NCBI GenBank assembly: GCA_029953675.1
Contig: JAMWBK010000001.1
Location: forward strand, 3,472,001-3,536,000
Source of the DNA: Rhodosorus marinus CCMP1338
Taxonomy: Eukaryota; Plantae; Rhodophyta
Length of the DNA: 64,000 bases
Reading direction: 5' to 3'
The translations under genes and the position numbers were made by a program. Positions 14,987 through 64,000 of this stretch are shown here, one piece after another (position 1 is the first letter of the stretch; every line of letters begins with the position of its first letter). The notes below the pieces were generated by a model, which did not search any database, was not told the origin of the DNA, and saw only the letters and a program-made list of their open reading frames with translations.

Positions 14987-17482
14987 TCAATCGCACTTAA
15001 TAGACTTGTATAAACGTCTGAGAAAGGTTACCGCAGCGTGGTATCCAACAGATCCGAGCATAAGAAAGCACGCGTAGGATACCGAGAACATGTACCCAAG
15101 GAAGTAGCTCACTTGAAGAAACCCGGAGAGGTTCGATCTCAACATCAGGTAATAGATGGAATAGAGGAACAAGTAAATACCTTAAGGAAGAAGCCAGCGC
15201 GATTCATTTCAGCGAGGTTAGTATGAAACGGTACGTGCGGATTCTTCCCACTAACCGGTCGATCCGCCGTTGAATATTGAATTCCACCACCACTCGTGGT
15301 CCTCAGCACAAAGCTGGTAGTAGCTAAACGCTGCGCAGACAAGGGCAGTCACCGCGAGTACAATAATGATCACGATCACGCCAATTCCGTTAAAGGAAAA
15401 GGTTTTATGACCCCACACTGACGCAAAAACGTACGCCAGCTCAACTAGCACCGCTCCGAACGGTAGCAGCCCAGCTAGCACCATCTAGAAGGATTGTCGA
15501 TACAAAGTGCTCAGCGCTGAGACGGAGAGTGACCAAAAACTCCATATCAAATGAAAAGCATCCGGTTCTCACCTGAACTTCCCAACGAAGATATACTGGT
15601 GGCTTGGGGATCTCCCTCCGCGCTTTTGCCGTTCGTATGGGAGCGTTAAAACCAGACTTGCCACTGCGTCTCCCGAGAACAGCGCCAAGGAAAGTCGCCG
15701 GAATAGCTATCAACCCAGTTATACATATCACAGAAGCCATCACCCAAAACGATAACGCCATCGTCGATCCATAGATCTTCGCTATCACGTCGAGAACCGT
15801 CCATACCCCGTAGATTGGACCTACGAAGCAAGGCCAGAACAAGAATGTTCAGCTTCTTCATCTTGTTCTCAAAGGAATCAATGCTACCAATGTCAATTCT
15901 AGGTGACGATGGATAGTCTACTAAGCTAACTTCTGAAGCGGAAGCTTTCGGCTTCTTCTGATCAACAGGTTGTACGACTCTCAGCTTCGCTCGCAAGCCT
16001 CCGGCTTTCGGGTCCGACCCTAGTTGTTTGATGCTAGCTCACCGGTGATGATCGAGCGATACAGAGTCCAGAGTAGGATGGAAGTAGGAGTGATGACAGG
16101 AGGCTTACCCAACGAAATCGTGAGACAAGAGATAGTGCTCAATGCGAGATTTCTCCCATCCATCTGTGTATAGAGTTTCGCACTTGTGTACCCCGCGACG
16201 AGGTTGGTCAAAGCGAAGGTAACAAGAAGAGCAGAATTGAAGGAGCCTCGACGTCCGTGGTAGAGGGTACTCGTCGTTGCCAACAGCACCAAGACGATCA
16301 GAAGGACAAGGACCTTCCCAGAGAGAGAGAGGGCGTTTAGTTTTCGGTTAAAAGAAAGGAGGAGCCCCGGGGTTGGGGGTGGGGGTGGGAGCGGCTGCTG
16401 TACCTGGGTACCCGTCCCAACAACAGCGCAGAAGAGTTCCTTGTACTGAGGAAAACGGAAAACGTCGGATTTGATGATCTTCCATCCGCGTTCATCTTCT
16501 GCCACCATGAGCTCGTCGTGTTCGAGGTCTTCCAGATCGACGCTGGCAGAATACCTCGCAAAGTCGCTGTTCACTGTTCTTAGGAAGATGCTGAGGAGCA
16601 GCATGAACAGCAGAACCGCCGCTGCTGCTGCGTTGATAACCGAGAGCCAGTGCGTTCGTAACTCGTTTGCCTGCAGTCGATCTCTTTCAATGTAACGGTT
16701 CACTCGATGCTGAAACAAGCAACGAATGGGTTCGAATGAGGGACAAGATAGCTCTGCTGATGTCGGAAAGTTTGAACTTACCTCGGTTGGCTTATCGCTC
16801 TCATACCAAGTTACTGAGTAGCTCAAGCTGAATTCCTTCTCACGGCCATGATCAAACTCCACCTCATCTTCAGCAATCACATCTACCTCGACTAGGTAGT
16901 TCTCGTTGTACTTCAGAGCGAAATGAAGCGTCGAATAGACGAAAACTTGGTTCATTAACTCCGGTGCGGCTTCGACTAGGTCACGACCTAAAGGAACCAG
17001 GTTGATAGCTAGCTCATCGATCATCAAGTCGTACTGCGCAAAAGAGAGAAAGACAAACTCCTTCAGAATCCGCGAGAGCTCGCTGAAGAGCCGAATCGCT
17101 GGTAGTTTACATGGTAGTTATTCGTAACCGCCAAACGAAAAGCATTGACATCTTCAGGGGTTAAGACTCCACCACAAATCTTCGTCTTCTCCTGATCCTT
17201 CCTGAACTTCACTGAAACCCCCGTGTTCACCAATCTATCGCCCTGAAGAAGCTCACCGAGCTGCATGTTATGGTACTCCATCCTCTCCGGGATGCATTCT
17301 CGTGGCCAAGGTACTGCGTCGAAGAACTGATACGATTCGCTGGGGTTTGAATACGGCACCATTTTATTCGCCCAGATGACCATTTCATCACCTGAGTTGT
17401 ACTTCGATATTCTCATCCCCCTTGCGATCGATACGCAGAGCACCATCAGGGATGGTATAAATATCCATCTATGCCACGTCAT
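14987..17482 (-). CDS. Transmembrane 9 superfamily (TM9SF/EMP70) protein, 7 exons
   Basis: Signal peptide, ANKMVPYSNPSESY, HWLSVIN, GWKIIKSDVFRFP, REIP, GLLPFGAV, EDHEWWW and a C-terminal IKCD. Introns at 17034-17110, 16710-16781, 16314-16403, 15821-16108, 15485-15572 and 15181-15255. Confidence 0.95.
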
Positions 17483-20469: not shown

Positions 20470-22139
20470 AAGCCTTAAGCTCGGGTGCTTCCGAGCGGCG
20501 AGCAGAATCGCTTTTGCTGCTCTTCGCTCTGGAGCGCGAACGCGTTTAGGTTTTTTTTGGTTTCTTCTTCTATTACTGTTTCTAGGAGGCAGAACTTGGG
20601 CCCTCCGATAACTTTGAATCATGTTGACTTTCGTCACATGCAAAAAAAAATGCACAAGTATTACGAATTGGATAAAAAAAGAAAGAGCTGGACAATGATC
20701 GTGAAATCGACTCCTTCCAGACAGATTGGGCCGACCCCGCCCTCCCGCCCCAGAGTCGGGAAGTTCCGTTCCCCGCTCGATCCACCGGCCATGCGTGGCA
20801 CGATCTTCTGGCTGCGTGGACCAAGAAACTAGCTAGTGCCAAGCGCGACCACCCTGTCGAGATGCTCCAGGATATCACAGTGAGTTCATCTTCGAGCCCC
20901 TCATTGGTAGAGGCGTCTGGCCGGCTCTGGAAAGCAACCGCGGACTTCCTTACCCAGGTCACACCGACCACATCTGAATTGTAGAGGGCTCACAGTCTTT
21001 AGACGTTTAGGCGCATTAGTGGCCAGTTGCCCTTGAACGCAGTGCGACTCGACGATTCGATATAGAACATTTTGTCCTTGCGAGTCTATTCTCGCTAGCC
21101 CGTTGAGGAGTTCGCTACCTTTCCCCTAAAACGCCCCAGCTGCTCCTAACCCCACGCTTTCTGACTAATAGTGCAGTGGAGCTTTGAAAGTCGAATGGAA
21201 ATCTAACGGACTGGTTCCTGCCGTTTATCCTCGTTTGTCCAACGCTGTTTTTTGAAGCAGTTGGTCCTGATTCCCGTTGGTTTATCGCCTGCCCCATCTG
21301 CCCTTTTTGTGAACAAGATCGTCGTCGATGTAGACCCGCATTGATTCCACCCTGCGCAAGCCTTCCTTCGCGCATGCATCGTTCCGCGGGGCTTCCCCTT
21401 GCCAAGGTTGCTTCTGGTGATCAGACAGGAACCTTCCCAATCGCCGCGTGCTTTTCCAGTTTTTCTGGTGTGCACGAGCACATGCTCGTCTGCCCGCAAC
21501 TAACGTTTCATCGTTTTTTGGGGGAGGGCTCGAGACTGCCCTGCAAGTTTCTCTACCGTACACCCCCCATCACGATTTCGCCTGTGGTTGCTTGCTTCCA
21601 AGAAGCAACCCGAAGGAACCGTGATATCTACGCACCAACCTGAAAGGCCTGTATCACAGGGAGGATGCTTCTGCGGATTCCATGAATAACCGTCGCCATC
21701 GCACCTCGCGAACGTTTTGCCCTCAGCACTTGGAAAGCTCGCTATGGAGAACTGTATACAAGCGTTGTCGCTCCGTGATTGATATAGGATATGGCCATTG
21801 CCGAGGAAGCGTGGTCCTCTGCATACGCATGGTTATATCAGATCCTTCCAAACTCAACTCTCTCTCCATCAATCTGACTGTTTTTGGGCACGCTAACCCT
21901 GCGCGTTATCAGAGATCTAGCTAGCGCACCCGGTGGACAATGGAGAAAGCTGGAAGAAGAGCTTGTGAACATATCCTATCAACATCAAGTGGATCTTGAA
22001 CGGCAGCTTATACCCTCACATACGACGAGCGACAGACAATTGAGGACGCACTGTATGGTCTGTCGAAAATTTATGATCGTTTGGAAAGGATCGATGGATG
22101 CTCTACATCCCTTGCAACAACCAAGCGAAAGGTGGCTGT

Positions 22140-22450
22140 CCTGTACTTTCAACGGCTGACTGTGTTGCACGGTGAACTCGCGGGAGGATAACAATTTCTA
22201 TGCAATCTCCTTCTCCCGTTCACCTGCTTCCCGTGGTTGTTCGGTTTATGACATAACAATCTTTGTTTCCAATATTTCTTGGGCATATCCCAACACCCCC
22301 TGTACAATGATAACCCCATCCTCCGTCGATGCACTAACCTCACCTCTACGACCCTCAGATCCCACACTCCTAGACATCCATCGGCGCTGCTAGTGAGAAC
22401 ACTTTTTAAGCCGTGTCCTAGTTCTGAGATATCGCTCACGTAGTCCAACA
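22140..22450 (-). pseudogene. WDR55/Jip5-like WD40 relic with frameshifts and deletions (or an error-rich consensus of a real gene)
   Basis: Collinear fragments DYVSDI..VLTSSADGCLGVWDLR, ASTEDGVI and HSQPLKVQD resemble recalled WDR55 motifs (EYIADM..LLTASGDGCLGIF, TGSTDGVI, HDQRLKFWD) but sit in different frames with about 60 aa missing. Confidence 0.5.
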
Positions 22451-23078
22451 CGAGAACAAAACTTGACAAGTCAAAACGGTAAGGTGCAACTCCGAATTTT
22501 TTAATTTTCATTATCGCGCTAAACAGAGTCCAGCTAAAGACTGAACACTGTATATACAGACAAAGCCGCTGCTCCAGAAGTCTCAAAGAACTTCACGCAT
22601 ATCGCTCACAACCCTTTCCTAATCTCGTCAAAAAACACATTAGGCTCAACCGCATCGTACCAGGCCCTTTTCTCCTCTCTTCCGCCTCAAGCTCAACGCC
22701 TCGATACCCCCACCCAAACGCAAACTCTCCCTCACTTCTCCATCACTTTCATCTTTGTAACGGTCAATAAACATCTTCGATATCTCTCGACCATAAATTT
22801 TCTGTCAACCATATTTCTCCTCCATTCGAGCTCAGACTGCCTAACAAAATAATATAGCACGCTGACTCTTCAAATCTCAAGTTCCCATTTTTGGGTTTTT
22901 CCAGAATTAACCGCTTCTTCAAGCAACTGAAATTACATAGAATACTAATACACCTTTTATCGGTCACATGGCATCTGTCCTAAAAAATACTCGGACTTTG
23001 GTGGTGCACATGCTCAAATCGTTTCGACGCGTTCACGTCTAAATCATTATTCGAATCATGTAGAGCCCGTCCAGGCTC

Positions 23079-23393
23079 CTAGATCCTCAGCAGCTTGGGC
23101 AACGGCAACTCGCTCGGCTCGGGAACCCGCGTTTCGAACGTTAACCCCGCGAACTTGCTAGGGCTCACACGCCTCGGATACCTCGAGCTGCTCCTCGACT
23201 TCCGTTCGCTCTTCGGAGTTCTAGTCTCCACAAAGAACCCTTCCTCCTTATCCCAAACCCGAATGGAGCTCTCGTCCAGAGAATCTCTCTCAAAGTCTTC
23301 CGACCCAGAACTATACACCTTCATTCCTTCGTTTACTTCATTCGCGTCCGGAACAAAGAACGGTACCAACTCCCTATAGCCTCTCGCTGACAT
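23079..23393 (-). CDS. Small disordered protein with a C-terminal PNRC/Edc1-type motif (putative decapping co-activator)
   Basis: 104-aa ORF ending KFAGLTFETRVPEPSELPLPKLL, matching the (Y/F)AGxxF..LPxP motif. G-rich 5' flank on the minus strand. Confidence 0.7.
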   Translation of the reverse strand: MSARGYRELVPFFVPDANEVNEGMKVYSSGSEDFERDSLDESSIRVWDKEEGFFVETRTPKSERKSRSSSRYPRRVSPSKFAGLTFETRVPEPSELPLPKLLRI

Positions 23394-26300
23394 TCTTCTC
23401 TTTATATAAAACTCTTCTAGATATAAAACTTTCCGTCTTCTTCAGCTCCAAAATACATAAAAACAAACACCACCAACGGCCCTTAGCCTCTCTTCCTTAG
23501 CTGCCTCAAAGCGCTCTCTCACCTTATTCATCAAAACTGTCTCTTCCGAAGTCGCTTCTATCTCTTCCCTCCCTCCCTCCCTCCCTCCTCACCATCCTGC
23601 TCCAGCGTCTTCATTCCGGCGTTTATAAACCTCCTCAAAAAGCCTCCAGAAGGCACTTTTTTCAAAGATAGACTATTTTACCAGCACCCTGACAACACCC
23701 CCCCCCCCCGTTACAATCATCTTCCACACCTTTCATAACCTTATTAATAATTTCAAAACTTACCGTTTTCGATTCTTCTAGTGTGTTCCTACCCCTTCCC
23801 TATCTGTCAGTCATTTATAGACCACATAGAGGGGGTCATATTCTCCGACATGACGTTTTCAATTAACAAAAACTAATCGTTCAACATAAATAAATTTTAT
23901 CCTTTTTGCGGTGCCAGCTGTGCTTAGAGATAATTCCAGCCTGCCGTTTTCCGTCATTTCACCACAACGAGAGGGGGGCAGGGAGGGGAGGAAAAGGATA
24001 AGAGCTGGTTGGCACACCCCTTACAGTATGTCAAGCAATTTCAATCATGACTAAGATTTTATACCCCTCAGTATTCTTATCTTGCTTACGTTTATTCAAT
24101 AAATACTACAATTTATTATTGTTTTAGGATATGACGGTGCAAGAAATGACCCTGTGGTAAATTGATTTGGCCTTGAGATCAGCGCAGATTGGGAGTGGTT
24201 ACGTCTTTAAGGGGTGTACTTGTTACGTACCCTATCATGACGGTGAATTATGGAGGTCTAGTACGAGAGGGTACAAGGGGGAACGTTCTCGAGAGGACGT
24301 TTTCGTAATTTATAAATTGCGTTAAATATGGAAAAGTTTTCATTGTAGATGTTTCCCCCGAGAGGGGTGAGGGGGAGTGCAAACCTGCTTCTTACCGACT
24401 TTGTTGATTGCAATGTGGCAAAAAAAAGAGGTGTGGATAGTACAGGGGGGTTTACGAATTTTGCAGTAGTCGCTTCAAGAAGATACGTAAAAAGTATCGC
24501 ATGGTAGAATTAATTTCAATGATTTGAATGAACATCTGTTCGTTGGTACACACCTTGTGGCTCGCCTTTTTGTTTGGCTTCCTATCCAATGAATACAGAA
24601 TTCAATAGTACTCTGAAGTGATTGGCTAAATCACCAATGCAAAATCCAATGATATAGAGAGAATCTGATCTCGCAACCCAATCACCGGGAGGGATGAAAG
24701 AGTAGAGGTAAGGGGCAGACTGATGAAAAGTCTTGGAATGAATTGTAGTTTGAAATTCTTCATGGATTCAAATATATTCTTATTTGTAAGGGAGTTACCA
24801 CCGCCCTCAGCACGAGAAGAAGAAGAACAATCAGGAAAAGGATGCTCTTCCCTTGGAAGAAAAAGAAAGAAACTGTTCAGAAAATCTGGCCACAGTGAGG
24901 ATTTCTCCAGTGCTTACACGCCCTGACCAGCATGTAGCAAGAGTAAACTTCCAATACATTTTGCGAAACCCCTCCCCCCCTTTTCTTCAAATCAAACTTG
25001 TCTTCAATAGGTTTCGAAATTTGATATTTGGTGGATATGCAAGTTTTTTCCAGGGGGGAGGGGGTGTCTTTTTTTTGCCCTGTTGGCCTCCATACCTAAA
25101 ATAGAACCCCGTCCAGCACCCAGCACCCCCCTTCCCCTTTCGTCACAATCAATTTTTTTTGTGTATATTTGGTTGATGGGAAAATCGGGAACCAAAGCAT
25201 TTCTCTAGGCGATGAGGAGAAGCGCTGGAGATTCTTTGCCGGAAAGAAAACTTTTTAAAATCAAGAGTACCTATCAGCAGCCAAAGCCCAAACTAATCTG
25301 GGCTGCACTTGCACAGTATCCAAATAGACTGTCTAGATTATGACACACACAAAACAAGAACGTAAGGTATATAACTTAAAGAATAAAAATATGTATCTTT
25401 TTGTGCCTGTTATAAAGTACAAACTATATAGAATTCAGGGAACTCGTACATGTTTTAAGAATTTTGGAATTGAGATGCCCTAACTCTCCATTCTGGCACT
25501 CAATTTTGAATCAAAAGACTACGAAAGTACACATATTCTTGGGCTCCCAACCCGCGTCAGATTCAATGCGGCTCCATATTTCTCACCAATCATACTGCGA
25601 TTTATAATCATATGGACAGACTGTCGTCAAATAGACCAATGAATATGGAATACTTGCCTCAGACAGCCTGTCCGAATTAGACTTCGACGTTGTGATTGGC
25701 AACCCTTCCAGACCCCTCGGAGTGCAGGCTGCGGGAGGAGCGCAGGTGCAGCAGGTTTTTTTTCTTGCCCACTGCTTCAGGCTTTGTTGGGCAGATCGTG
25801 CTAATCCTTCTGTGAGCAAGTAGTACAGGATGCTAACTAAAGATTCTCGTTAGTTTGATGTGTCTCCATCTTCATCAAATCATCAGTTTCTCGTACTGAT
25901 GACGCTCGCCCCGTGCCATCAGATTTTTGATGCGCAATAAGATCCCCCTCTTGCGTTCGGGCGGAATGCGACCGCGACTGTAATTTGGCTCTCTTTGTGT
26001 AAACAGCCCAACATTCTTGATGCAAGAACCAGTGCTCCGCCCACCCGAGAGATTGATGGCGCATGACAATGGCACATGAATGCTACTGCTCCGAACGCAT
26101 ATTTTTGTGGGCTTGTGTGCTTGGGCTGACGGACAAGGTGTATAACTTGAAGCTCGACAAAAATTAGTCGCTCTGCGCTCCAGGGAGCAGGCGCACTCAC
26201 TGCAAAAGCAACCTTTCACAGTTGACTTCCACCTCAGAGAGCTTCCCGTTTGCGGATGAAACCATGCTAGTAGATGCAACCACTTTCTGTGGCAAGGGTG

Positions 26301-32975: not shown

Positions 32976-35195
32976 CTACGACTGCTCGATGTGTCTCAAG
33001 TGTACGAGTAGGCCGGCAATATCGGCTGGGTTGACGCCTCCAACTCTCTGGGCCTGTCCAATGGTTTCTGGTCTGATCTTTCCGAGCTTCTCCCTCGCCT
33101 CCATTCGCAGCTGCTCGATTTTTGAGTAGTCAATATTGCCAGGGATCTTCTTCCCCTCCGATGCTCGGACTTGTTGAACTTCCTCCAGCTGGCGCTCGAG
33201 GTAGCCCTTGTACTTGATCGCCGTCTCGATGGTCTCCCTCTCAAACGCGTTCATCAGACCGTCCGCCTCGGCCAAGCCAGCTTCGACGAAGTGGTGATAC
33301 CGCACCCCCGGTCGGCAGAGCAAGGACTCCAACGTCGTGACATGGCGTATTGTCCCACCGGTCAGTTCAACAACCTTCTTCGCGGCATCAGAGCCTTGCG
33401 GTACCAAGGTCTTCCCCAGGCGCAGTTCCTCTGTCTCCAACCTCTCCTGCTTCTCCTGGAATATCTTCCATCGACTATCGTCTACTAGTCCGTACTTCCG
33501 CCCGATCGCCGTCAGTCTCTTATCAGCATTGTCAGCTCGCAGCAGCAGGCGATACTCCGACCTCGATGTCAGCACTCGATACGGCTCCTTCAGCTCCTTG
33601 GTACAGAGATCATCAACCATCGTCCCTATATACGAGCTCTCCCTAGGCAGCGATAACCCCTCCTCAGTACCCTCCGCATACATGGCCGCATTCAGGCCCG
33701 ACAAGAGTCCCTGAGCAGCAGCCTCCTCGTATCCAGTCGTCCCACAGACCTGTCCCGCTAGGAAGAGACCCCCAACCTCACGCGTCATTAACGTCGTGTT
33801 CAGCTGAGTCGCCGGCAGGTAGTCGTAATCCACAGAGTACGCCGGACGCATCATTCGGCACTCTTCGAGACCAGGAATCGATCGAAGCATCGAGAGCTGG
33901 ATGTTTTCCGGCATCCCAGTCGAGAATCCCTGAATGTAAAGCTCGTTGGTCTCACGGCCTTCGGGTTCGATGAACACCTGGTGGTGGGATTTGTCGGCAA
34001 ACCTTACAATCTTATCCTCAACAGAAGGACAGTAGCGCGGTCCAGAGGACGTCATAAAACCGCCGTACTTGGGTGTCAAATGCAGGTTTTCTCGGATGAT
34101 CCTGGTTCCAATTTGAACGCAGATAGGCTGTGAGTTCAACGGTCGGCGAGAGGGTGCATGCGGGATGGAACGAGCCCTACTTGTGCGTCTCCTCCGTCGT
34201 CCTGGTTAAATAGCATGGAATCACTGGTCGTGGATTCCACTCCAATGGATCGTAACTAAACCAGTGATCATCGGGATCACTGTGCTGGGGCTCCATCTTG
34301 GAGAAATCCACCGTCCTTCGATCCACCCTCGCGGGAGTTCCCGTCTTCAGCCTATCCGTCTCGAACCCTAAAGTTTTCAGGGTTTCCGTCAATCCGAACG
34401 ATGCCATTTCTCCAGCACGTCCTGCCGGCATCGACTTGGAGCCCACCCAGATCCTTCCCTCCAGGAAAGTCCCCGTCGTGAGCACCACCGATTTACACCC
34501 AAAAACACTCCCAAAATATGTCACCACACCTAAAATAAGACCGAAATTTAAAAAATAACTAAATTGCAAATACATATACAATAATCTTGTCGTCCAATGG
34601 ATTAAATTAAGATTTCCTCACCACTGACGGCACCGTTGGTGTCGAGGGTGATGTCGTAGACCATTCCTTCTCTGTACGAGAGAAGTCCATTCGTACTCTG
34701 TGAGACCTGATCTAGGACGTTTCTCATTTCTCTGGAGTATTCTGCCTTGTCAGTCTGGGCTCGCAAGGCCCAGACAGCGGGGCCCTTGGACTTGTTCAGG
34801 ACTCGCCTCTGGAGGTAGGTTCTGTCTGCGAGCTTTCCGATCCAGCCGCCGAGCGCGTCGACTTCGTGGACGAGGGTTGACTTTGCTGGGCCACCCACTG
34901 CGGGGTTGCATGGCTGCCAGGCGATTTTGTCGAGGCTGAGAGTGAGGAGGAGAGTCTTCACCCCGCGTCTGACCGATGCCAACGCCGCCTCACACCCGGC
35001 GTGACCCGCCCCAACCACCACCACGTCAAATTGCTCCTCGACCTCTCCAACATCCTCACCACGAACCGTCCGCAGCCCGCAGCGGGGCGCTACCCTCCTC
35101 AACCCATCGCTGCTCCGTCCACGACCACAAGACGACCTCAGTCCAGACCCCTTCTCCTTCAGTAGAACACCTCCAACACCTCCAAGAAACGCCAT
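32976..35195 (-). CDS. mnmG: tRNA uridine-34 5-carboxymethylaminomethyl modification enzyme MnmG/GidA, plastid-targeted; exons 35195-34622, 34529-34181, 34101-32976
   Basis: [80 protein letters not shown]. Confidence 0.97.
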
Positions 35196-35443
35196 TTCCC
35201 CAATTTCAATCCAATACCTACCACCTACCCCACACCCACCCAAACAAAAAAAAGGCACGCACCTCACCGTCTTCACACCGTCGTGGACTTCGTGCTTGAC
35301 GACCTTCTCTCTCCTCAAAAGAGAAAGCGCGAAGAAGAAACCCAAACCAAATTCTTCATCCCCCCTCTTCAACCCCTATCTCACCCAAATTCCTATCTAG
35401 AAATATTTAATATTTAATTTCTCCACAATCTCGTGCTTCATGA

Positions 35444-38599: not shown

Positions 38600-39685
38600 T
38601 CAGAACAGCAACTGCAAACAAGGACAAACGACAAAGCTCACGATCAGTTTCCGATGTGATTTGCTTCTTCCTCGTTGGGTTACAAACAAGGTTTACCTTC
38701 ACGACGAATAGGTTGATTAACATCATAAGTCCGATGTGGACGAGAGGGTTTCCTGAGCTGAGGTGGTTGTCTATCGTCGATCCTGTTGGTTACGATCAAG
38801 GTTAGGCCAATGGAGCTCTCCTTGGAGGAGGGGTTTGATTTGCGGAGACTTTGGCTCACTGAACGACTTGACTTGTTCAACCATGGACAGCGGTTTCTTC
38901 GTCTCGAGAATCTGTTCCCACTCCTCGTTGAGACTTGAGAGTTCGTTCTCCTTCTCCGTCAACGTTGCTCGGAGCTCGTTGAGATCCGGGAGCGGCTCGA
39001 ACGTTACTTTGTTCGCGGGGGTCACCTTGGGATCTTCGATCATCACGCCTTTGTCTTGAGAAGACGGGGCGCTGGCGCTTGCTGATCTTGCGCCAAGGGA
39101 GGACGGGGCGTCACCAAGGCTCGGAACGGTTGGTTGAACCAGATCCAGCTTCGTCGCTTTCTTAAGCGCGCTCATAGGCTCAGCTGCGGAACGCGGTAAA
39201 CTGCTGCTCGCCGGGTCTGCTGTGCCGGTTGGAGCCGCGGGAACTGTTCTAGCCTCTGATGCGGGTACCCCACCTTCCTCATCGGGAGCTGCGTCTTCAG
39301 CGACTTCACGAGTATAATTCACTGAAAAATATACGTTAGAGATTCGATTTGAGGTCTCTGGCGGCAGACTTTTCCACAAGATTGCGATATCCCCTTGAGG
39401 CGCCAAATCTTCGTGAAACACCGTCACCAGGCAGTGGTCTTCAATCTCCTCCAAAGGTTCCGGGAGCTTCTCCCGAACCGATAAGTTGATGTCTACATGC
39501 TCTCCTGGGTTAACCACTCCTACGCTCGGCTTGACCCGATACCTCGCCGGCTGGTTTACCCTCACCTTGTACACCGCAAACTGATCCAAGGACAAATTCT
39601 CAGCACGAACAGCGTGCGATATTCGACTCTCACCAGCTTCGGGTAAGCTGATCGTTACTATCCTATCTATCTTAAGACCTGCCAT
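38600..39685 (-). CDS. VAP/SCS2-family MSP-domain protein with coiled coil and C-terminal TM anchor, 3 exons
   Basis: FAVYKVRVNQPARYRVKPSVGVVNPGE. Two GT-AG introns near 38860-38786 and 38696-38612 restore the tail GNPLVHIGLMMLINLFVVKLLF. Confidence 0.88.
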
Positions 39686-41134
39686 CCTCGCTTTTTCCAC
39701 TCATATAACCCCTCCTCTATTCCATCAAGACTCCCATCCCCAACGTACCAGCAAGAAAGTGCACCACCTCGGACAAATCCAACTTCTTCCCAACGCGAAA
39801 ATAGCAATCCATTTACACCTCAAATCTCCAATATATAGACCTACTTGAACCCATTTCCAATATAAAACAAAAAATATGAGGTATATATTCATAAACTAAA
39901 ACCTAAATGTATCTTAATATAGAAATAATAGACGCATCTTTCAGGAACGATTTCAGTGCCAACCGAACATCTAATCTCTTCAACCAGAAATATCAATACA
40001 TTAAAAGCACATACCTTCAATATATAGAATATCCCCACTATTTTACGTTGTAAAACAAACAAATAGGGGTATATGACCTAAATTAAAACTTTCTATATTG
40101 TTAATATAGAAATAATAGACTCCTCTTATCATATATATAGTATCTACATCACAAAAAACGAAAATTCAAAATCGTGTCCAATCAGGTCACCTGATTGAAA
40201 CAGAAGTCCTCCCCATTGGATCATAAATATTTATTTTTAGTGCTTTTCATAAACGGCAATATAGTAAACAGGCTGTCCTTATATTTTATATTTGCATGGG
40301 ATTCCTGAGTAGGAAACAATAAATCAAATTGGCCCAGGGGGGGACGCACTTCTGTTCTTAGATGGCTAATGATACAATAAACAAATGTATTTATGAAATA
40401 TCTTGTTGGTCAAGGATTCGATTCGGTCTCCACTGTGGAATCCTTAGGGGGGGGGGGTTGTTGTTGTCGCTAGAGGTAATTCGTCTGGTGATGGGTGTTT
40501 TTTGAATATTTTGTGCACGGTCTTCTTTTTCAAGGGAGCTAGGGAGTTTCACGTCTTGATTGGTGAAGCACATCCGAGTTTTAGGTGACAGCAGAATTTA
40601 CATAGCGGGGATGGAGAGATGGATCTGGGAGGTTGGGAGGAGGGGAGATGGGGGGGGGGGGAAAAGGTTGGAGGAGAGTTTGTTGCTGGCTGTACTGGGT
40701 TTTTTGGGGGCTTTTGGATGATATGTTTGACTGTGAATTTTAGATTGTTCTTTGGAAGGTTTTTAGTAAATTGCAGGGCATCGGTGCTTTTCTATTTATG
40801 AGGAGGGTTTGGTTGGTTGGTGAGGTTTGTGAGTGCTTCGGCTGACTCCGTTGGATTTGGAAAAAAGCGTTAGATCTTATCTAGTCTAGGCTATCATCCG
40901 CTTTTAGCCCTTTTTTTTTTTTACTGCAGAAGCGCCGGATTATTTATACCGCTTTGGCAAAGCGGTTACTGTATTTGGAGACGTTCGGTGGCTGGTGCTG
41001 AAAGCTCTCCTGGGTGGTTTGTGGAGGAGCTGAGTCTGTGAAGTTGAGGTTTTGAATGGTGTGAACAGGCTGCAAAGGACGTAGAGGTGAGGTGGCCTGG
41101 GGTGGGGGAAGGAAGCAGATTTGTTGGGCTAGTT

Positions 41135-42043
41135 ATGGAAGGAAGTGCTTCCGCGACTGGTGCGGTGACTCCGCCCACCACCGTCAATGCTTCAATACTT
41201 CGTGTACTTCGAAGGAACAGACTGGGGATAGCGTGGATTTTTGTTCTGATAATGGTGATCCTGATGGTGCTCTTGACGCTCAGAGGCGTGTTTGGGAAAA
41301 TTACGAAATTTGGGTTGAGAGTGTGCCTCTCTATTTCGTTTTTATTTTTGGTGTTCATCCTTTCCATATCAGTGAAGCTGTGCTTTAATGACGATGCGAG
41401 TAGTCAGGAGGAAGAGGGTGAACGTTCACAGGAGCTCGAGACTGTGCCACCTAGGGGGGCAGCTGCGCGAGTTGGACGTGGTATTCACAATCGTAAACTC
41501 GTTTTCAAACTGTTGATTTGAGCCTAAGTTTTGGTGTACTTGATGAATGGCTTAGTCTAGATCTCGAGAACGATCTGCCAGTGTATCCGTTGGTGCAGGA
41601 TCTTGCTTCATCTAACGCATTCTGTTTTCGTTGTGTCTCTACGCCGAAATAGGATCTCGGAGAAGTCAGAGAAGAATTTTGAACGAATTTTTGAGTTCTG
41701 CGACCCAGGCGACGATCGATCGACTGCCCATGTACATATTTCAAGGAACTAAACAGAAAGAGAAAAGCGAGCCAGACGAGGAAGCTGGTGAGGCCGGAGC
41801 CTCGTTTGAGTGCTCCATTTGTATCACGGAGGTTGACCCAGGAGATAAAATGAGAATCTTGCCGTGCTTGCATCAGTTTCATTCTGAATGCGTTGGTGAG
41901 TTGCAAGAAAGAGTTTCCTGGAGATCCTGGAGGTTTCCTGCAATTTATGTCACTGACCTCCCATGTTCCGCCTTTGGATGGAATCAGATCAATGGCTGCT
42001 GGCGAACGCCAAATGTCCAACATGCAAATATTCCATTTTGTAG
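41135..42043 (+). CDS. Membrane-anchored RING-H2 E3 ubiquitin ligase (ATL/RNF-like), 3 exons
   Basis: Two N-terminal hydrophobic segments. CSIC..LPCLHQFHSECVDQWL..CPTC after splicing out about 41896-41987. Confidence 0.92.
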
Positions 42044-42650
42044 TAGTATATGCAGGTGGACGGTTTGCGCTGAATTCACGGTTGTGTCCGTTGGCCGGGT
42101 CCAATTCGAGCAAGGCCGGAAACGGAGCTCGAAACAAAGTACAGGATTGATGCGCAGCGCGAGAGGTTGGATGAACAGAGCACGCTCACATGTCGCGCAC
42201 AGCCTTACGCAACCAAAATCATATCATTCCTAGAGTAGCGTAGGTGGTGAAGAAATCTGGACTCTGTGCTCAAGAGTTCAGTGGACATATTTGTAGCTCA
42301 AATGATTGCTATAGGAGAACGCTTCAACCCCTCGTTCCCTTAGCCACTTGGGGGAGAGGGAGAAACCGGGATTCCGAGCCTTGTGGAGCGGACACGATGA
42401 GGCTTCCTGGCAGTTCAGCTTAGCTATTCCTATTGATTGGATGTCGTCTACAGATGTATATAAAACACAAAACGAGCTTGGACTCCATCGGAAAGAGCAA
42501 TCCGGGACATTTCACTGCTGGTCTGCTCCGGAGTGTTCAGCCAAGTCCACCTCGAAGATGAGAACCTGAACGTCCATAGTGAACGGTCACAAATCCACCG
42601 TGTCAAGCCGTGCATCTCATGGGTCCACACTATACGCCAACTGCCGTAGC

Positions 42651-42910
42651 TATTGTCCAGAGACATCCGGCATCCTACTGGACAGTCCCAGGAGTGACCT
42701 CGACCGAACCTGGCTCATCGTTCATCAATCAATAAAGATTAGTATCAGATTGATCCGCTCTAGTTAGTACACAATAAATACCATATTGTAGGCAGACATT
42801 CGGCGTCCCATGGGACAGTCCCAAGAGTGAGACCGAACCGGGCTCGGAGTTGATCAATCAATAAACATGAGTATCAGATTGATCTCTCAGAGTTAGTACA
42901 CAATAAATAG
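42651..42910. repeat. Two-unit tandem duplication, about 130 bp
   Basis: GGACAGTCCCA at 42680 and 42813. GACCGAACC, AGTATCAGATTGATC and GTTAGTACACAATAAATA occur in both units. Confidence 0.9.
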
Positions 42911-47706: not shown

Positions 47707-50700
47707 ATGGGGATTGATCTGGGTGATGAAGGGTTTGATGTGTTGACTTGGGTGAACGGAAAGTTGCCTAGTCACGATTCTGAGAGTTTGCTGTTGGAGG
47801 TGAGGGAAGAATGGGAGGCGGCGCAAGGGGAGCTGTCTGCTGCGTTGAGTACGGCTCTGACTGCTGTTCCTCAGAGTGTGAAGGAGGCGGATCGCGTTAG
47901 GCAGATGGGGACGGGTTTGATGGATGGTGTCGATCGAGTGTCAACAAGGGTCGAGGGGGTGGAGACCGGTGCAGAGGAGGCTGTTGCAGCAATAGCAAAC
48001 GCAGATGCAGTCCTCCGAAGAGTTGAGAGGGCGCGGGATATGCTGGCGCGCGCTGCTGAGGTGGAAACTCTCACAGAAAGAATCGAAGTATGCAGACATA
48101 TTGAGTACACCCCTGCCAAAAAAAACTGCTTTGGTGAACTCAAAACACCTTAAAATTTTTTCACACTTGCAGGCGATCTTCGTCGGAGGTGACCTCCTCG
48201 CTGCTGCTGATTCAATCGCGAAAATGAGGGAGAATCTGGTGGCCCTCCAAGACGTCCCGGAAATCAATAGTAAGAAGGAAGCGCTCTACAATGCAGATAA
48301 GGTAAGTCTCAGATTCAATACTCTCCGTCCCTCCCCGTCTGCTATAGACCAGCCGTCCAGCATTGAGGCCATAGACAAGTACCCAATGTTACAGGGTCGC
48401 ACCTGCCATAAAAAGGCCACTGATACTATCCTGGCCAGGATGTCATCGATCATGCCAATGCCCCCGGGTGGATCTGGGCCACGAAAAGGAGCCACTGTTA
48501 CTATCCTAGGCAGGAAGTCATCGAACATGGCAATGTTCCGGGGTTGATACGGGCCACGAAAGGAGCCACTGTTACTATCCTGGCCATGATGTCATCGAGC
48601 ACGCCAATGTTCCGCTGTGGGACGGGCCACGACAGGAGCCAATGTTGCGACGCTGGCCAGGACGTCATCGAACATGCCAATGTTCCTTGATGTTGGGTGG
48701 TGGCGAATGTTTCTTTGTCGAGAACACGGGCCATACGTTACCCAATGTTCCGGGGTGGTATGGACCACGACAGGAGTCAATGTTACGACGCTGGCCAGGA
48801 CGTTATCGAACAGGCCAATGTTCCTTGATGTTGAGTTGTGTCGAATGTCGAGAAACACAGGCCATACGTTGCCCAATGTTCCATTTTGGTATGGACCACG
48901 AGAGGAGCCAATGTTACGACGCGGGCCAGGACGTCGTCGAACATGCCAATGTTCCTTGATGTTGGGTGGTGGCGAATGTTGCTTTGTCGAGAACACGGGT
49001 CATACGTTGCGCAATGTTCCGGGGTGGTATGGACCACGACAGGAGCCAATGTTACGACGCTGGCCAGGACGTCATCGAACAGGCCAATGTTCCTTGATGT
49101 TGAGTTGTGTCGAATGTCGAGAAACACAGCCCATACGACAGGAGCCAATGTTACGACGCGGGCCAGGACGCCATCAAACTCGCCAATGTTCCTTGATGTT
49201 GAGTGGTGGCGAATGTTTCTTTGTCGAGAGCACGGGCCATACGTTGCCCAATGTTCCAGGGTGGGACGGGCCACGCAGGAGCCACTGTTACTCCCCTGGC
49301 CAGGACGTCGTTGAACTGGCCCATGTTCCTCGATGAAGAGCGAGGGGTCGTTTGTTTGCTCCTTGGACGGGACAAGAACTGGCTGTAAACCAGTGAATGT
49401 TCGGATCTGTTGTTAGATGGCAAAACAGCAAAATTTGTGTTTCCTGAATTCGTGTTGTCTTCTTAACTCCGATGCAGAAACTGAACGCACTGGCGGAACC
49501 TCGACTGACGAACGCGCTTGAGTCTGAGAGCGTTACTGGAGCACAGTCTGCTCTTGAAATCTTCGAGAAATCGGGAAGAGAAGATGCGTTCATTAGTCTG
49601 TATGTGTCCACCAGGGGAGCCAAGGTGAGTTCCTACTTTGGAGTAGCTTGTGCTGGATTCAATTTCCACGACGAGTTGACGTTTTCTGCGAAATTTTTGT
49701 ACCGAGCACAGTTGAGAAAACGATGGAAAGAAATCATCGACGCTGGAGAAAAACGCCCAACAACAGCCTTCTACGAGGCGCTCTCGGTCGCTCTCGATCG
49801 TGAAGCAAGCTGGCTGCAAGAGGCACTTCCAAAGCTTCGGCAGTTGCTCATACCCGCACTCATTATTGAAGTAAGGAAATTATGCTATCAAACTCTACCT
49901 TGCGGTCCTCAATTTAGCTGAAGCTTCTGGTGCTTGGGCTAACCCTTCGACCTTGTCCTTCCGCGTAGGTCTTCACGCTCCTCGATCCGCCGATGAACCT
50001 CGAGCTACCCAAGTCACTCGATGTAAGTGGGTACCTCGCTCTGGAGACCGACGAAATGCTGCACAAGACCGGACTGCTTTCGGCTCACCTCGCGTTGTGG
50101 GTGACCGAGGCGTGCCTGTCTGGAGACGAATCCGGAAGACAAGTGGATCCGGAGCTGTTGGTCCAGGCTTGCGAGTGCCTCACCGCTCCGTTGAGAGCGT
50201 ATTTTGAAGCTTTTCCAGTCTTGGAGAGGACGTTTGCTACCCACCTTATGAATGAGTTTCCATGGAACGCCATTCAGAATCCGACCGTGAGTTAAAAGAC
50301 TGGTCAAGGCCGCATGATCGCGGCTTGTTGAGGCTCACCATATCTCGTATGGTTTTGTTTGTTGATTTGTTTCGCGGTGGGATAGTTGGAAGAGGCATCG
50401 AGACATATCAACGAGGCGAGCGCGCATCTCCTGAAAGCTGGAACCCAGGTCACGACGCGTTGCGTTGAGAGAACCAAAGGTGCTTTGCTGGGAGCGTCAT
50501 TTCATGCCCAGAACTCGGTCGCGATAAACTTCGCCTCGAGGGCTGTCAAGCTTATCAAAACCGCTCCGGCGTTCAAAGTCTCGTGAGTGATTCTCGTTCA
50601 AAACCCTTAGCGTCATTGCGCTCAGATCGTTCCTATTGAAAACAGAGTGATTACCACAAACCAGGGATTGGATCTCCGTACAGTCTTCGCTTTCACTGTT

Positions 50701-62712: not shown

Positions 62713-64000
62713 ATGAAGGTCTTAGCGGTGTTTTCGTTGTTTCTGGTGCTGGTTGGTGTGTGTTTTGGGGACCTCGATGACTGCGTAACGGTTGTGAAGG
62801 ATGGGGAGAAGCAGTACGCGTCATGTATGGAGCTCTCGGAAGGGTTTGAGCTGTACTACGAGTTCGTTGGGGACTCTATCGATGTTACGTTCTCCAATGA
62901 TGCTAATGAGTACTCCGGATTTGGGTTTTCGGAGGACTTGAATATGATTGGAACGACGGTGGTGATTGCGTATGGAACGGACAACGACAATAGTTTTATT
63001 GAAGACTATTTCCTAGTGGCGAAGACGCCCGGTGGCGCTGCACCTGGGTTGGGCAGGCAGATGCTCTCGCTGATGGAGGTTACTATCGAAGACGGCAGGC
63101 TGTACGCGAGGTTTATCAGGCCTTTGAGCCCCGACGGAGAGGTCACGGTTCAGGGTGGTGACAACAATGTGATTTGGGCAATGGGGAACTTGCCCCAATC
63201 GCCTACGTCACTGACGCGCCACACATCCAGGTTCGCTCAAACCATTCAGTTGGAGCAGCAGACGGTGGCGCCCACTGCAAGTCCGACTGCAAGCCCGACT
63301 GCAAGCCCGACTGCAAGCCCGACTGCAACAACCGCCCCGACAAGCCCGCCGCCTTCTCCAACCGTGTCGGCATCCGCAAGCGAAACTGACTCTCCATCCT
63401 CGTCAGCTTCGCCAACTCAAACGGTGTCGCCATCCGTGTCGGTGTCTGAGAGCGAATCCGAATCGGAGACTGAGACAGTGTCTACCTCTCCATCTGCGAC
63501 AGCATCTGCGACCGCATCACCGACCGCAACACCGACCGCAACACCGACCGCAACACCGACCGCAACACCGACCCCAACGGCTACTCCTGTGTGCTTCCCA
63601 GGCTCGTCTACCGTGACCCTCGAGGGCGGGTCTACCATCTCGATGGAAGCGCTGCGAGCTGGAGATCGTGTACTGGTATCTGGATCACAGTACAGTGACG
63701 TCTTTGCCTTCACGCACCGGATGAAGGACGTCCAGTCTACGTTCGTGAAGATCTCGACGGCAGATACATCGATCGAGCTCAGCGAAAACCACTACCTCTC
63801 CATCAAGGGTCAGCTTCGAGCAGCCGGAGCTGTCCATGTAGGAGACGTGATCGAGCTCGCGGACGGAGAATTGGCCAAGGTTTTGTCAGCGAAACTCGTG
63901 GAGAGGAAGGGCCTGTACAACCCTCAAACGCTCGAGGGTACCATCGTGGTCGACGGCGTTGTGGCCTCCACTTTCACCCAAGTGGTCCACCCAGTTCTCG
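62713..64000 (+). CDS. Secreted protein: signal peptide + DOMON domain + S/T/P linker + Hedgehog-type Hint domain; 3' end lies beyond the window
   Basis: Uninterrupted frame from ATG 62713 to the edge (missing from the ORF track because it has no stop). DOMON: YSGFGFS, MIG, EDYF, RFIRPL, VIWAMG. Hint starts CFPG at 63592, with LRAGDRV, LSENHYL and GLYNPQTLEGTIVVDGVVAS. Confidence 0.92.
   Translation, partial: MKVLAVFSLFLVLVGVCFGDLDDCVTVVKDGEKQYASCMELSEGFELYYEFVGDSIDVTFSNDANEYSGFGFSEDLNMIGTTVVIAYGTDNDNSFIEDYFLVAKTPGGAAPGLGRQMLSLMEVTIEDGRLYARFIRPLSPDGEVTVQGGDNNVIWAMGNLPQSPTSLTRHTSRFAQTIQLEQQTVAPTASPTASPTASPTASPTATTAPTSPPPSPTVSASASETDSPSSSASPTQTVSPSVSVSESESESETETVSTSPSATASATASPTATPTATPTATPTATPTPTATPVCFPGSSTVTLEGGSTISMEALRAGDRVLVSGSQYSDVFAFTHRMKDVQSTFVKISTADTSIELSENHYLSIKGQLRAAGAVHVGDVIELADGELAKVLSAKLVERKGLYNPQTLEGTIVVDGVVASTFTQVVHPVL

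Follow-up and report, generated by a model that had tools for sequence, protein, structure and literature searches.

The window analysed here, a 64,000-nucleotide stretch of DNA from the red alga Rhodosorus marinus, ends within a gene whose product joins a DOMON domain, through a low-complexity stalk, to a Hedgehog-type Hint (Hog) domain. The gene lies at positions 62713-64000 of the forward strand, where 429 codons form one open frame that continues past the window end. Its ATG at 62713 is preceded by an in-frame stop, with no earlier ATG between the two. An earlier note on this DNA had described the product as secreted, with a Met/His-type DOMON, a stalk, and a Hedgehog-type Hint domain from Cys294. 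Profiles, structural models, and conserved residues all support that layout, and the DOMON-stalk-Hint arrangement is confirmed, far beyond chance. The residue numbers given in the note are all correct as well: Met78 (NMIG), His170 (LTRHTS), Val293/Cys294 (TPVCFPG), FTHR at 333-336, and SENH at 357-360. The features of the gene are the following.

62713..62769, + strand: N-terminus that, by eye, resembles a signal peptide (aa 1-19, MKVLAVFSLFLVLVGVCFG), predicted to be cleaved after Gly19
62770..63264, + strand: DOMON domain (aa 20-184; PF03351 match at aa 43-158), predicted to fold as an all-beta sandwich and with the pair Cys24/Cys38 conserved
62944..62946, + strand: codon of Met78, candidate axial haem ligand in the motif M-x-G-S/T, invariant in 11 aligned DOMON units
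63220..63222, + strand: codon of His170, candidate second axial haem ligand in the motif SL-x-x-H, at least 90% conserved in the 11 units
63265..63588, + strand: T/S/P/A low-complexity stalk (aa 185-292), recognised by its composition and tandem arrays and containing (TASP)n and (TATP)n repeats
63589..63594, + strand: predicted self-cleavage site Val293/Cys294, with Cys294 aligned to Cys258 of fly Hedgehog
63592..63978, + strand: complete Hedgehog-type Hint fold (aa 294-422; PF01079) with His335, S357-x-x-H360, and STFT (419-422) replacing SCYA
63979..64000, + strand: QVVHPVL, which begins the linker to a tail for adduct or sterol recognition; the window end cuts the gene 7 residues past the Hint fold

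The N-terminus, MKVLAVFSLFLVLVGVCFG, has a hydrophobic core with a mean Kyte-Doolittle value of 2.98, and the mature start DLDDCV is common to the window protein and to a relative, P0130, where it reads A/DLDDCV. T (26%), S (24%), P (19%), and A (18%) dominate the 108-residue stalk (aa 185-292), part of which is encoded by 12-bp tandem repeats in two arrays, one at 63270-63328 and the other at 63509-63578, that both keep the reading frame. The stalk is probably O-glycosylated. The relatives considered here are the 150 best representatives from 50% clusters of about 15 billion proteins, and the number of DOMON-Hint proteins among them is a lower bound. An S/T/P/A-rich stretch directly before the Hint Cys is present in about half of 146 relatives. 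The window protein itself is absent from the protein collections searched, where the best Hint identity is 54%.

Pfam DOMON (PF03351) matches aa 43-158 with E=2.3e-16 and a score of 60.6 bits (cut-off 32.7). The AlphaFold2 (AF2) model of the domain has a pLDDT of 87.9 and a pTM of 0.85, and a Foldseek search with it yields eight matches at E<=0.001 with query TM-scores (TMq) of 0.53-0.67. All eight are, on our reading of the PDB entries, of DOMON type: dopamine beta-hydroxylase (DBH), cellobiose dehydrogenase (CDH), pyranose dehydrogenase (PDH), and the gamma subunit of ethylbenzene dehydrogenase (EBDH). Both profile and structure, the two grounds on which the assignment was tested, support DOMON. 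Six of the eight matches, those to CDH, PDH, and ethylbenzene dehydrogenase, are haem b domain or subunit chains. Haem b cytochrome DOMONs are matched at TM 0.61-0.67.

The closest DOMON relatives by exhaustive HMMER search are P0028, a secreted DOMON protein that has no Hint domain (44% identity), and the repeats of P0018 (DM13, three DOMON units, and a cytochrome b561) and P0084 (four DOMON units and a b561), which are 24-30% identical, with per-unit E values down to 4e-17. In an alignment of 11 DOMON units, which includes b561-linked repeats and leaves out the degenerate first repeat of P0084, no unit departs from Cys24, Cys38, Met78, or Gly80, and conservation of His170 reaches at least 90%. 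The omitted repeat, the sole unit missing the Met, is missing the His as well. The AIR12-family profile DUF568 is matched by 6 of the 11 units and CDH-cyt by 5. The counterpart of Met78, by both motif and position, is Met90 of HYP1, a CYBDOM protein in which M90/H174 is the proposed b-haem site; the assignment of Met78 and His170 as ligands is made by similarity of motif and spacing to this pair rather than by direct alignment (PMC10784544). Taken from sequence conservation and modelled fold, a haem b-type DOMON is well supported but not proven. Word-index protein searches add little here: the DOMON alone found nothing, and the whole product, dominated by its low-complexity stalk, found Hint matches only.

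In the Hint-less relative P0028 (344 aa), the DOMON is followed by a stalk of (KPTKTPP)n and, where the window protein has Hint, by a C-terminal region rich in Cys and Lys, suggesting that the same kind of DOMON sits on different C-terminal devices.

The second half of the product is a Hint domain of the Hedgehog type. Pfam Hint (PF01079) matches aa 291-425 with E=2.9e-23 and a score of 83 bits (cut-off 29.7). In a phmmer search of the PDB, aa 294-421 align with the Drosophila Hedgehog-C fragment (1AT0) and with its D46H mutant (6TYY) over chain residues 1-144 of 145, indicating that the Hint fold is complete within the window. The AF2 model, built with 29 clade members, has a pLDDT of 92.9. 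Foldseek places the D46H mutant 6TYY first, together with 1AT0 (TM 0.86, root-mean-square deviation 1.8-1.9 Å, about 30% identity, E 6e-11 and 4e-10); below Hedgehog-C come inteins and BIL domains (E>=6e-8, 9-19% identity). The possibility that the domain is an intein was considered and rejected: the Hint end, VVASTFTQVVHPVL, has no HN[CST], the relatives have no C-extein, and inteins come second to Hedgehog-C in the fold search.

The residues on which Hedgehog autoprocessing depends can be followed through the 151 clade Hint domains. Cys-Phe at the Hint start (Cys294-Phe295 here) is invariant, and Val is the commonest residue at -1 of the Cys (59 cases). In block B, S357-E-N-H360 in the window protein, the His is present in all 151; the first position is Thr in 104 and Ser in 47, and Ser retains the hydroxyl. 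His335 aligns with the Hedgehog general base, Asp303 (D46), and 150 of the 151 domains have His there. In Hedgehog, the general-base residue activates the incoming sterol hydroxyl (PMC9163320). The earlier note had taken FTHR and SENH as signs that the acceptor may not be a sterol. That argument fails on two counts. With His in 150 and Ser in 47 of 151 domains, both motifs are ordinary for the clade. In addition, the D303H (D46H) mutant of Hedgehog-C keeps its structure and its cholesterolysis, and accepts additional sterols (review PMC9163320); His at the general-base site is therefore no argument against a sterol acceptor.

What follows the Hint fold can be judged from the relatives, which extend a median of 40 residues past the last codon of the window. 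Their tail contains a helix, AHALLAPxRxxY, that is conserved across the clade. Aligned with Hedgehog sequences, the helix of one DOMON-Hint relative, P0016, pairs with LAHWGLAPMRLL in the fly protein and WAHRAFAPFRLA in human SHH, where the sterol-recognition region (SRR) begins. A transmembrane anchor after Hint was also considered and set aside: the tail is hydrophobic enough for a transmembrane segment in only 7 of 149 relatives. One relative of another build, P0033 (798 aa), has two tandem Hint modules with hydrophobic segments after each, unlike the short tails of the clade. Neither the missing 3' end nor further relatives were recovered by two metagenome contig scans with single-protein DOMON and Hint queries, which gave no confirmed locus.

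The DOMON-Hint pairing recurs. A search for the architecture, as the earlier note had proposed, finds it in at least 3 of the 150 representatives besides the window protein: P0016, P0066, and P0130. P0016 (473 aa) has the same layout as the window protein and matches query residues 5-428 in one stretch; P0066 (469 aa) is found on 12-kb genomic contigs from two samples; and P0130 (514 aa), an MMETSP transcript, has an additional Cys-rich insert. The four DOMON-fused Hint domains are not mutual nearest relatives (ranks 45-150 of 150), and the window DOMON is nearer to the Hint-less P0028 than to the DOMONs of the other three fusions. A single orthologous DOMON-Hog lineage was rejected on these grounds. 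To judge from these sequence relationships, the fusion would be either old and strongly diverged or made more than once.

DOMON is one of many front ends in the clade. Among 146 members, Pfam recognises Temptin_C in 10, trypsin in 6, a copper type II ascorbate-dependent monooxygenase C-domain in 5, DOMON in 3, and spondin-N in 2; fasciclin, Kelch, pentapeptide, and pectin acetylesterase domains occur once each. In animals, a copper monooxygenase domain accompanies DOMON in dopamine beta-hydroxylase. The majority of front ends have no Pfam match, and no recognisable N-terminal family is found in more than 10 of the 146. The named relatives, Pyropia yezoensis, Porphyra purpurea, and Hildenbrandia rubra, are all red algae.

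Metagenome contigs give some further views of Hog genes. On a 42-kb Logan contig (L001, 4502-6606), a Cys-rich open reading frame (ORF) of 434 aa with an S/T/P stalk lies about 195 nt before a separate Hint ORF that begins just upstream of Cys-Phe. The two look like parts of a single gene whose Hog exon directly follows an intron, an arrangement in which front-end exon shuffling would be easy. On one metagenome contig, two Hint genes lie within 4 kb, one of them with a faint pentapeptide-repeat match. A Temptin_C ORF is located just upstream of the first Hint gene (L003 1858-2355 and 4024-5820; L002 5338-6498). Hog genes may be clustered. The SRA runs behind the related contigs are named in no paper of the literature searched.

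Outside this gene, the window is nuclear DNA of a eukaryote, with introns, and it carries GidA/MTO1, EMP70, MSP, and RING genes. The GidA/MnmG (MTO1-like) tRNA-modification gene at 32976-35372 (-) is divided into at least two ORF pieces, which cover profile positions 1-123 and 245-390; this split indicates one or more introns and confirms that the DNA is eukaryotic and nuclear. Gene fragments encode EMP70/TM9SF at 16020-17027 (-), an MSP domain (VAP-like) at 38771-39700 (-), and a RING finger at 41631-42233 (+). Searches for tRNAs and Rfam families over the whole window gave no matches. A tandem-repeat block at 48416-49216 has periods of 73-75, 99, 138, and 269 bp and scores up to 949, and the 239-aa 'ORF' at 48617-49336 is probably satellite repeat read in frame. 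There is also a 129-bp tandem duplication at 42661-42909 (1.9 copies, 82% matches). Local GC skew in 2-kb bins is strong, at +0.27 (1-2000), -0.32 (22001-24000), and +0.26 (40001-42000).

How might such a protein work? A secreted precursor of four parts, the signal peptide, the b-haem-type DOMON, the S/T/P/A stalk, and the Hog domain, would enter the secretory pathway. Cys294 would then attack the carbonyl of Val293, and the resulting N-to-S acyl shift would give a thioester. To resolve this thioester, the C-terminal tail would hold a hydroxyl nucleophile in place and His335 would activate it. The likeliest nucleophile would be the 3-beta-OH of a membrane sterol; cholesterol is said to be the main red-algal sterol (PMC10692144). 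The DOMON-stalk product (aa 20-293) would be left ester-linked to the lipid at the outer face of the plasma membrane. There it would form an extracellular b-type cytochrome on a glycosylated spacer, whose haem b could transfer electrons to acceptors outside the cell, a role proposed for AIR12 and CYBDOM proteins. The whole chain, from self-cleavage to a lipid-anchored extracellular b-type cytochrome working like AIR12, strikes us as the most likely reading and as somewhat more probable than not.

Several points weigh against this proposal. The adduct-binding tail of the window protein falls outside the window, and the tail of the relatives is much shorter than the Hedgehog SRR, with which its first helix alone aligns. 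The motif-J Cys (SCYA) is replaced by Thr in the window protein, as it is in 139 of 151 relatives, and in Hedgehog this Cys is reported to form a branched intermediate (PMC12054796). No biochemical test of any Hog domain from the red-algal clade was found in the literature searched. On the DOMON side, the top Foldseek match is the dopamine beta-hydroxylase DOMON, and the window domain matches the general DOMON profile only, with no match to DUF568 (PF04526; E<=1, E<=0.1) or CDH-cyt.

The shortness of the tail (a median of about 40 aa past the window, with only one helix aligned to the SRR) and the Thr at motif J would both suit a simpler outcome, in which the Hint domain cleaves and does nothing more. 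Water would hydrolyse the thioester, a soluble DOMON-stalk glycoprotein would go to the wall or medium, and the Hog domain would be a device for maturation or quality control. S/T/P-rich stalks are typical for wall glycoproteins, which counts on the same side. Simple thioester formation needs no general base, however, yet the position is kept in 150 of 151 domains, and the Hedgehog counterpart of His335 serves to activate the sterol hydroxyl (PMC9163320). The clade-wide conservation of the tail helix likewise argues against hydrolysis. We judge this outcome unlikely, though it deserves to be taken seriously.

A second alternative, independent of the acceptor and of the fate of the thioester, concerns the cargo: the DOMON may have no haem and instead bind a sugar or other ligand, like the DBH-type or CBM9-like domains, so that the Hog domain would carry a cargo for adhesion or ligand binding. 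The top Foldseek match speaks for this, and we know of no haem in the dopamine beta-hydroxylase DOMON. Sugar binders do belong to the DOMON superfamily. Furthermore, the window unit matches only the general DOMON profile, and searching the PDB by sequence, whether with the single DOMON or with a profile, gave no cytochrome; cytochromes were reached by the fold search only. Set against this, haem b chains make up six of the eight fold matches, whereas CBM9 is a weak one (E about 0.01, TM 0.41). In addition, the Met and His columns are conserved together with those of the b561-linked DOMON repeats, and the one unit that has lost the Met has lost the His too. A DOMON that works by binding something other than haem is also unlikely, to about the same degree.

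The acceptor itself could be different. The earlier note had suggested a non-sterol acceptor. A different hydroxyl or amine, for example on another lipid or on a cell-wall glycan, would then resolve the thioester, and the cytochrome would be tethered elsewhere than to the membrane. The tail departs from the Hedgehog SRR after its first helix, and D46H Hedgehog tolerates more substrates (PMC9163320), so a His-type site could take other nucleophiles. Bürglin gave the region the name ARR in non-Hedgehog proteins because the adduct was unknown (PMC2362128). FTHR and SENH, on the other hand, are norms of the clade and compatible with sterol transfer, and no sequence feature indicates an alternative acceptor. 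A non-sterol acceptor is accordingly rather improbable in our view. Finally, a decaying gene copy or an assembly artefact that has no function is very hard to credit: the gene is cut by the window end and its exact protein is absent from the collections searched, but 429 codons stay open across two repeat arrays, all conserved catalytic and ligand positions are intact, and both domains model with high confidence. The role that the earlier note had assigned to the protein, that of anchoring or releasing an extracellular redox module, is still the best reading.

Comparison with known systems begins with Hedgehog-C (1AT0, 6TYY). The fold is shared, as are the N-terminal Cys-Phe, the (S/T)xxH of block B, and a residue at the general-base position, and the relatives have the first SRR helix in common with it. 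The window protein differs in having, naturally, His for Asp, Thr for the motif-J Cys, and Val rather than Gly before the Cys. Its cargo is a DOMON and not the Hedge signalling domain. The tail of the relatives, at about 50 aa, is shorter than that of Hedgehog, which is an estimated 65-70 aa. To our knowledge, animal Hedgehog proteins are the only ones in which a Hog domain has been demonstrated to attach a sterol covalently.

The window gene belongs to the red-algal group of the Hog clade that Bürglin catalogued in 2008 from red algae, mosses, and protists (PMC2362128). In that catalogue the red-algal proteins have the motif-J Cys replaced and N-termini that vary (PMC2362128), in agreement with the note's statement that red algae have Hint proteins with varied N-termini. 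Those N-termini were given no recognisable domains and DOMON was unmentioned (PMC2362128), whereas the N-terminus of the window protein is a defined, cofactor-type domain. The note had allowed that the architecture might already be well described. In the literature searched there is no mention of DOMON together with a Hog or Hint domain, yet the architecture is not unique to the window. Apparent literature matches for DOMON, hint, and Hedgehog look unrelated, with only one or two occurrences of DOMON in each paper, where it is probably the surname of an author. Front-end swapping in red-algal Hog proteins was already known, and DOMON is a new, recurrent cargo on a known autoprocessing module. 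For the many algal and protist Hog proteins catalogued in 2008 (PMC2362128), a cargo with a predictable and spectroscopically visible cofactor would offer an easy read-out for cleavage, adduct, and destination of the product.

For the DOMON half, the nearest kin by sequence are the CYBDOM proteins (HYP1, CRR; here P0018 and P0084), which have the Met and His columns and the Cys pair in common with it. As integral membrane proteins, they receive electrons from cytosolic ascorbate through their b561 core (PMC10784544), whereas the window protein has no b561 and, within the window, no transmembrane segment. The cytochrome domain of cellobiose dehydrogenase (4QI3, 1D7B) shares the beta-sandwich fold (TM 0.63-0.67), and His176 of 4QI3 is similarly located (PMC10784544). 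It is only 12-13% identical to the window DOMON and undetectable by sequence profile, and in cellobiose dehydrogenase it is fused to a flavin dehydrogenase, not to Hint. Haem b in this cytochrome is ligated by Met and His, with which the entry name '1PL3, M65H mutant' agrees.

The closest parallel in working is AIR12 (Arabidopsis At3g07390), a single-DOMON b-type cytochrome with a glycosylphosphatidylinositol (GPI) anchor, in which haem was shown by electron paramagnetic resonance (PMC10784544). In outline both proteins have a signal peptide, one Met/His-type DOMON, and a C-terminal device that would attach a lipid. They differ in that device: GPI transamidation in AIR12, and what would be Hog-mediated esterification in the window protein. 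The DUF568 profile is unmatched by the window protein, so it is not a member of the AIR12 family, and the likeness is one of working only. The window protein could then be the first Hog cargo with recognisable cofactor chemistry, a sterol-esterified surface b-type cytochrome that is a convergent counterpart of GPI-anchored AIR12; in this full form we offer the idea tentatively, as one that may well not hold. Sister Hog proteins with copper-monooxygenase or trypsin front ends fit in with it. If the idea did hold, protein cholesteroylation would be used outside animals for surface redox enzymes, and the comparison with AIR12 suggests that cell-surface anchoring of DOMON cytochromes arose by two unrelated lipidation routes.

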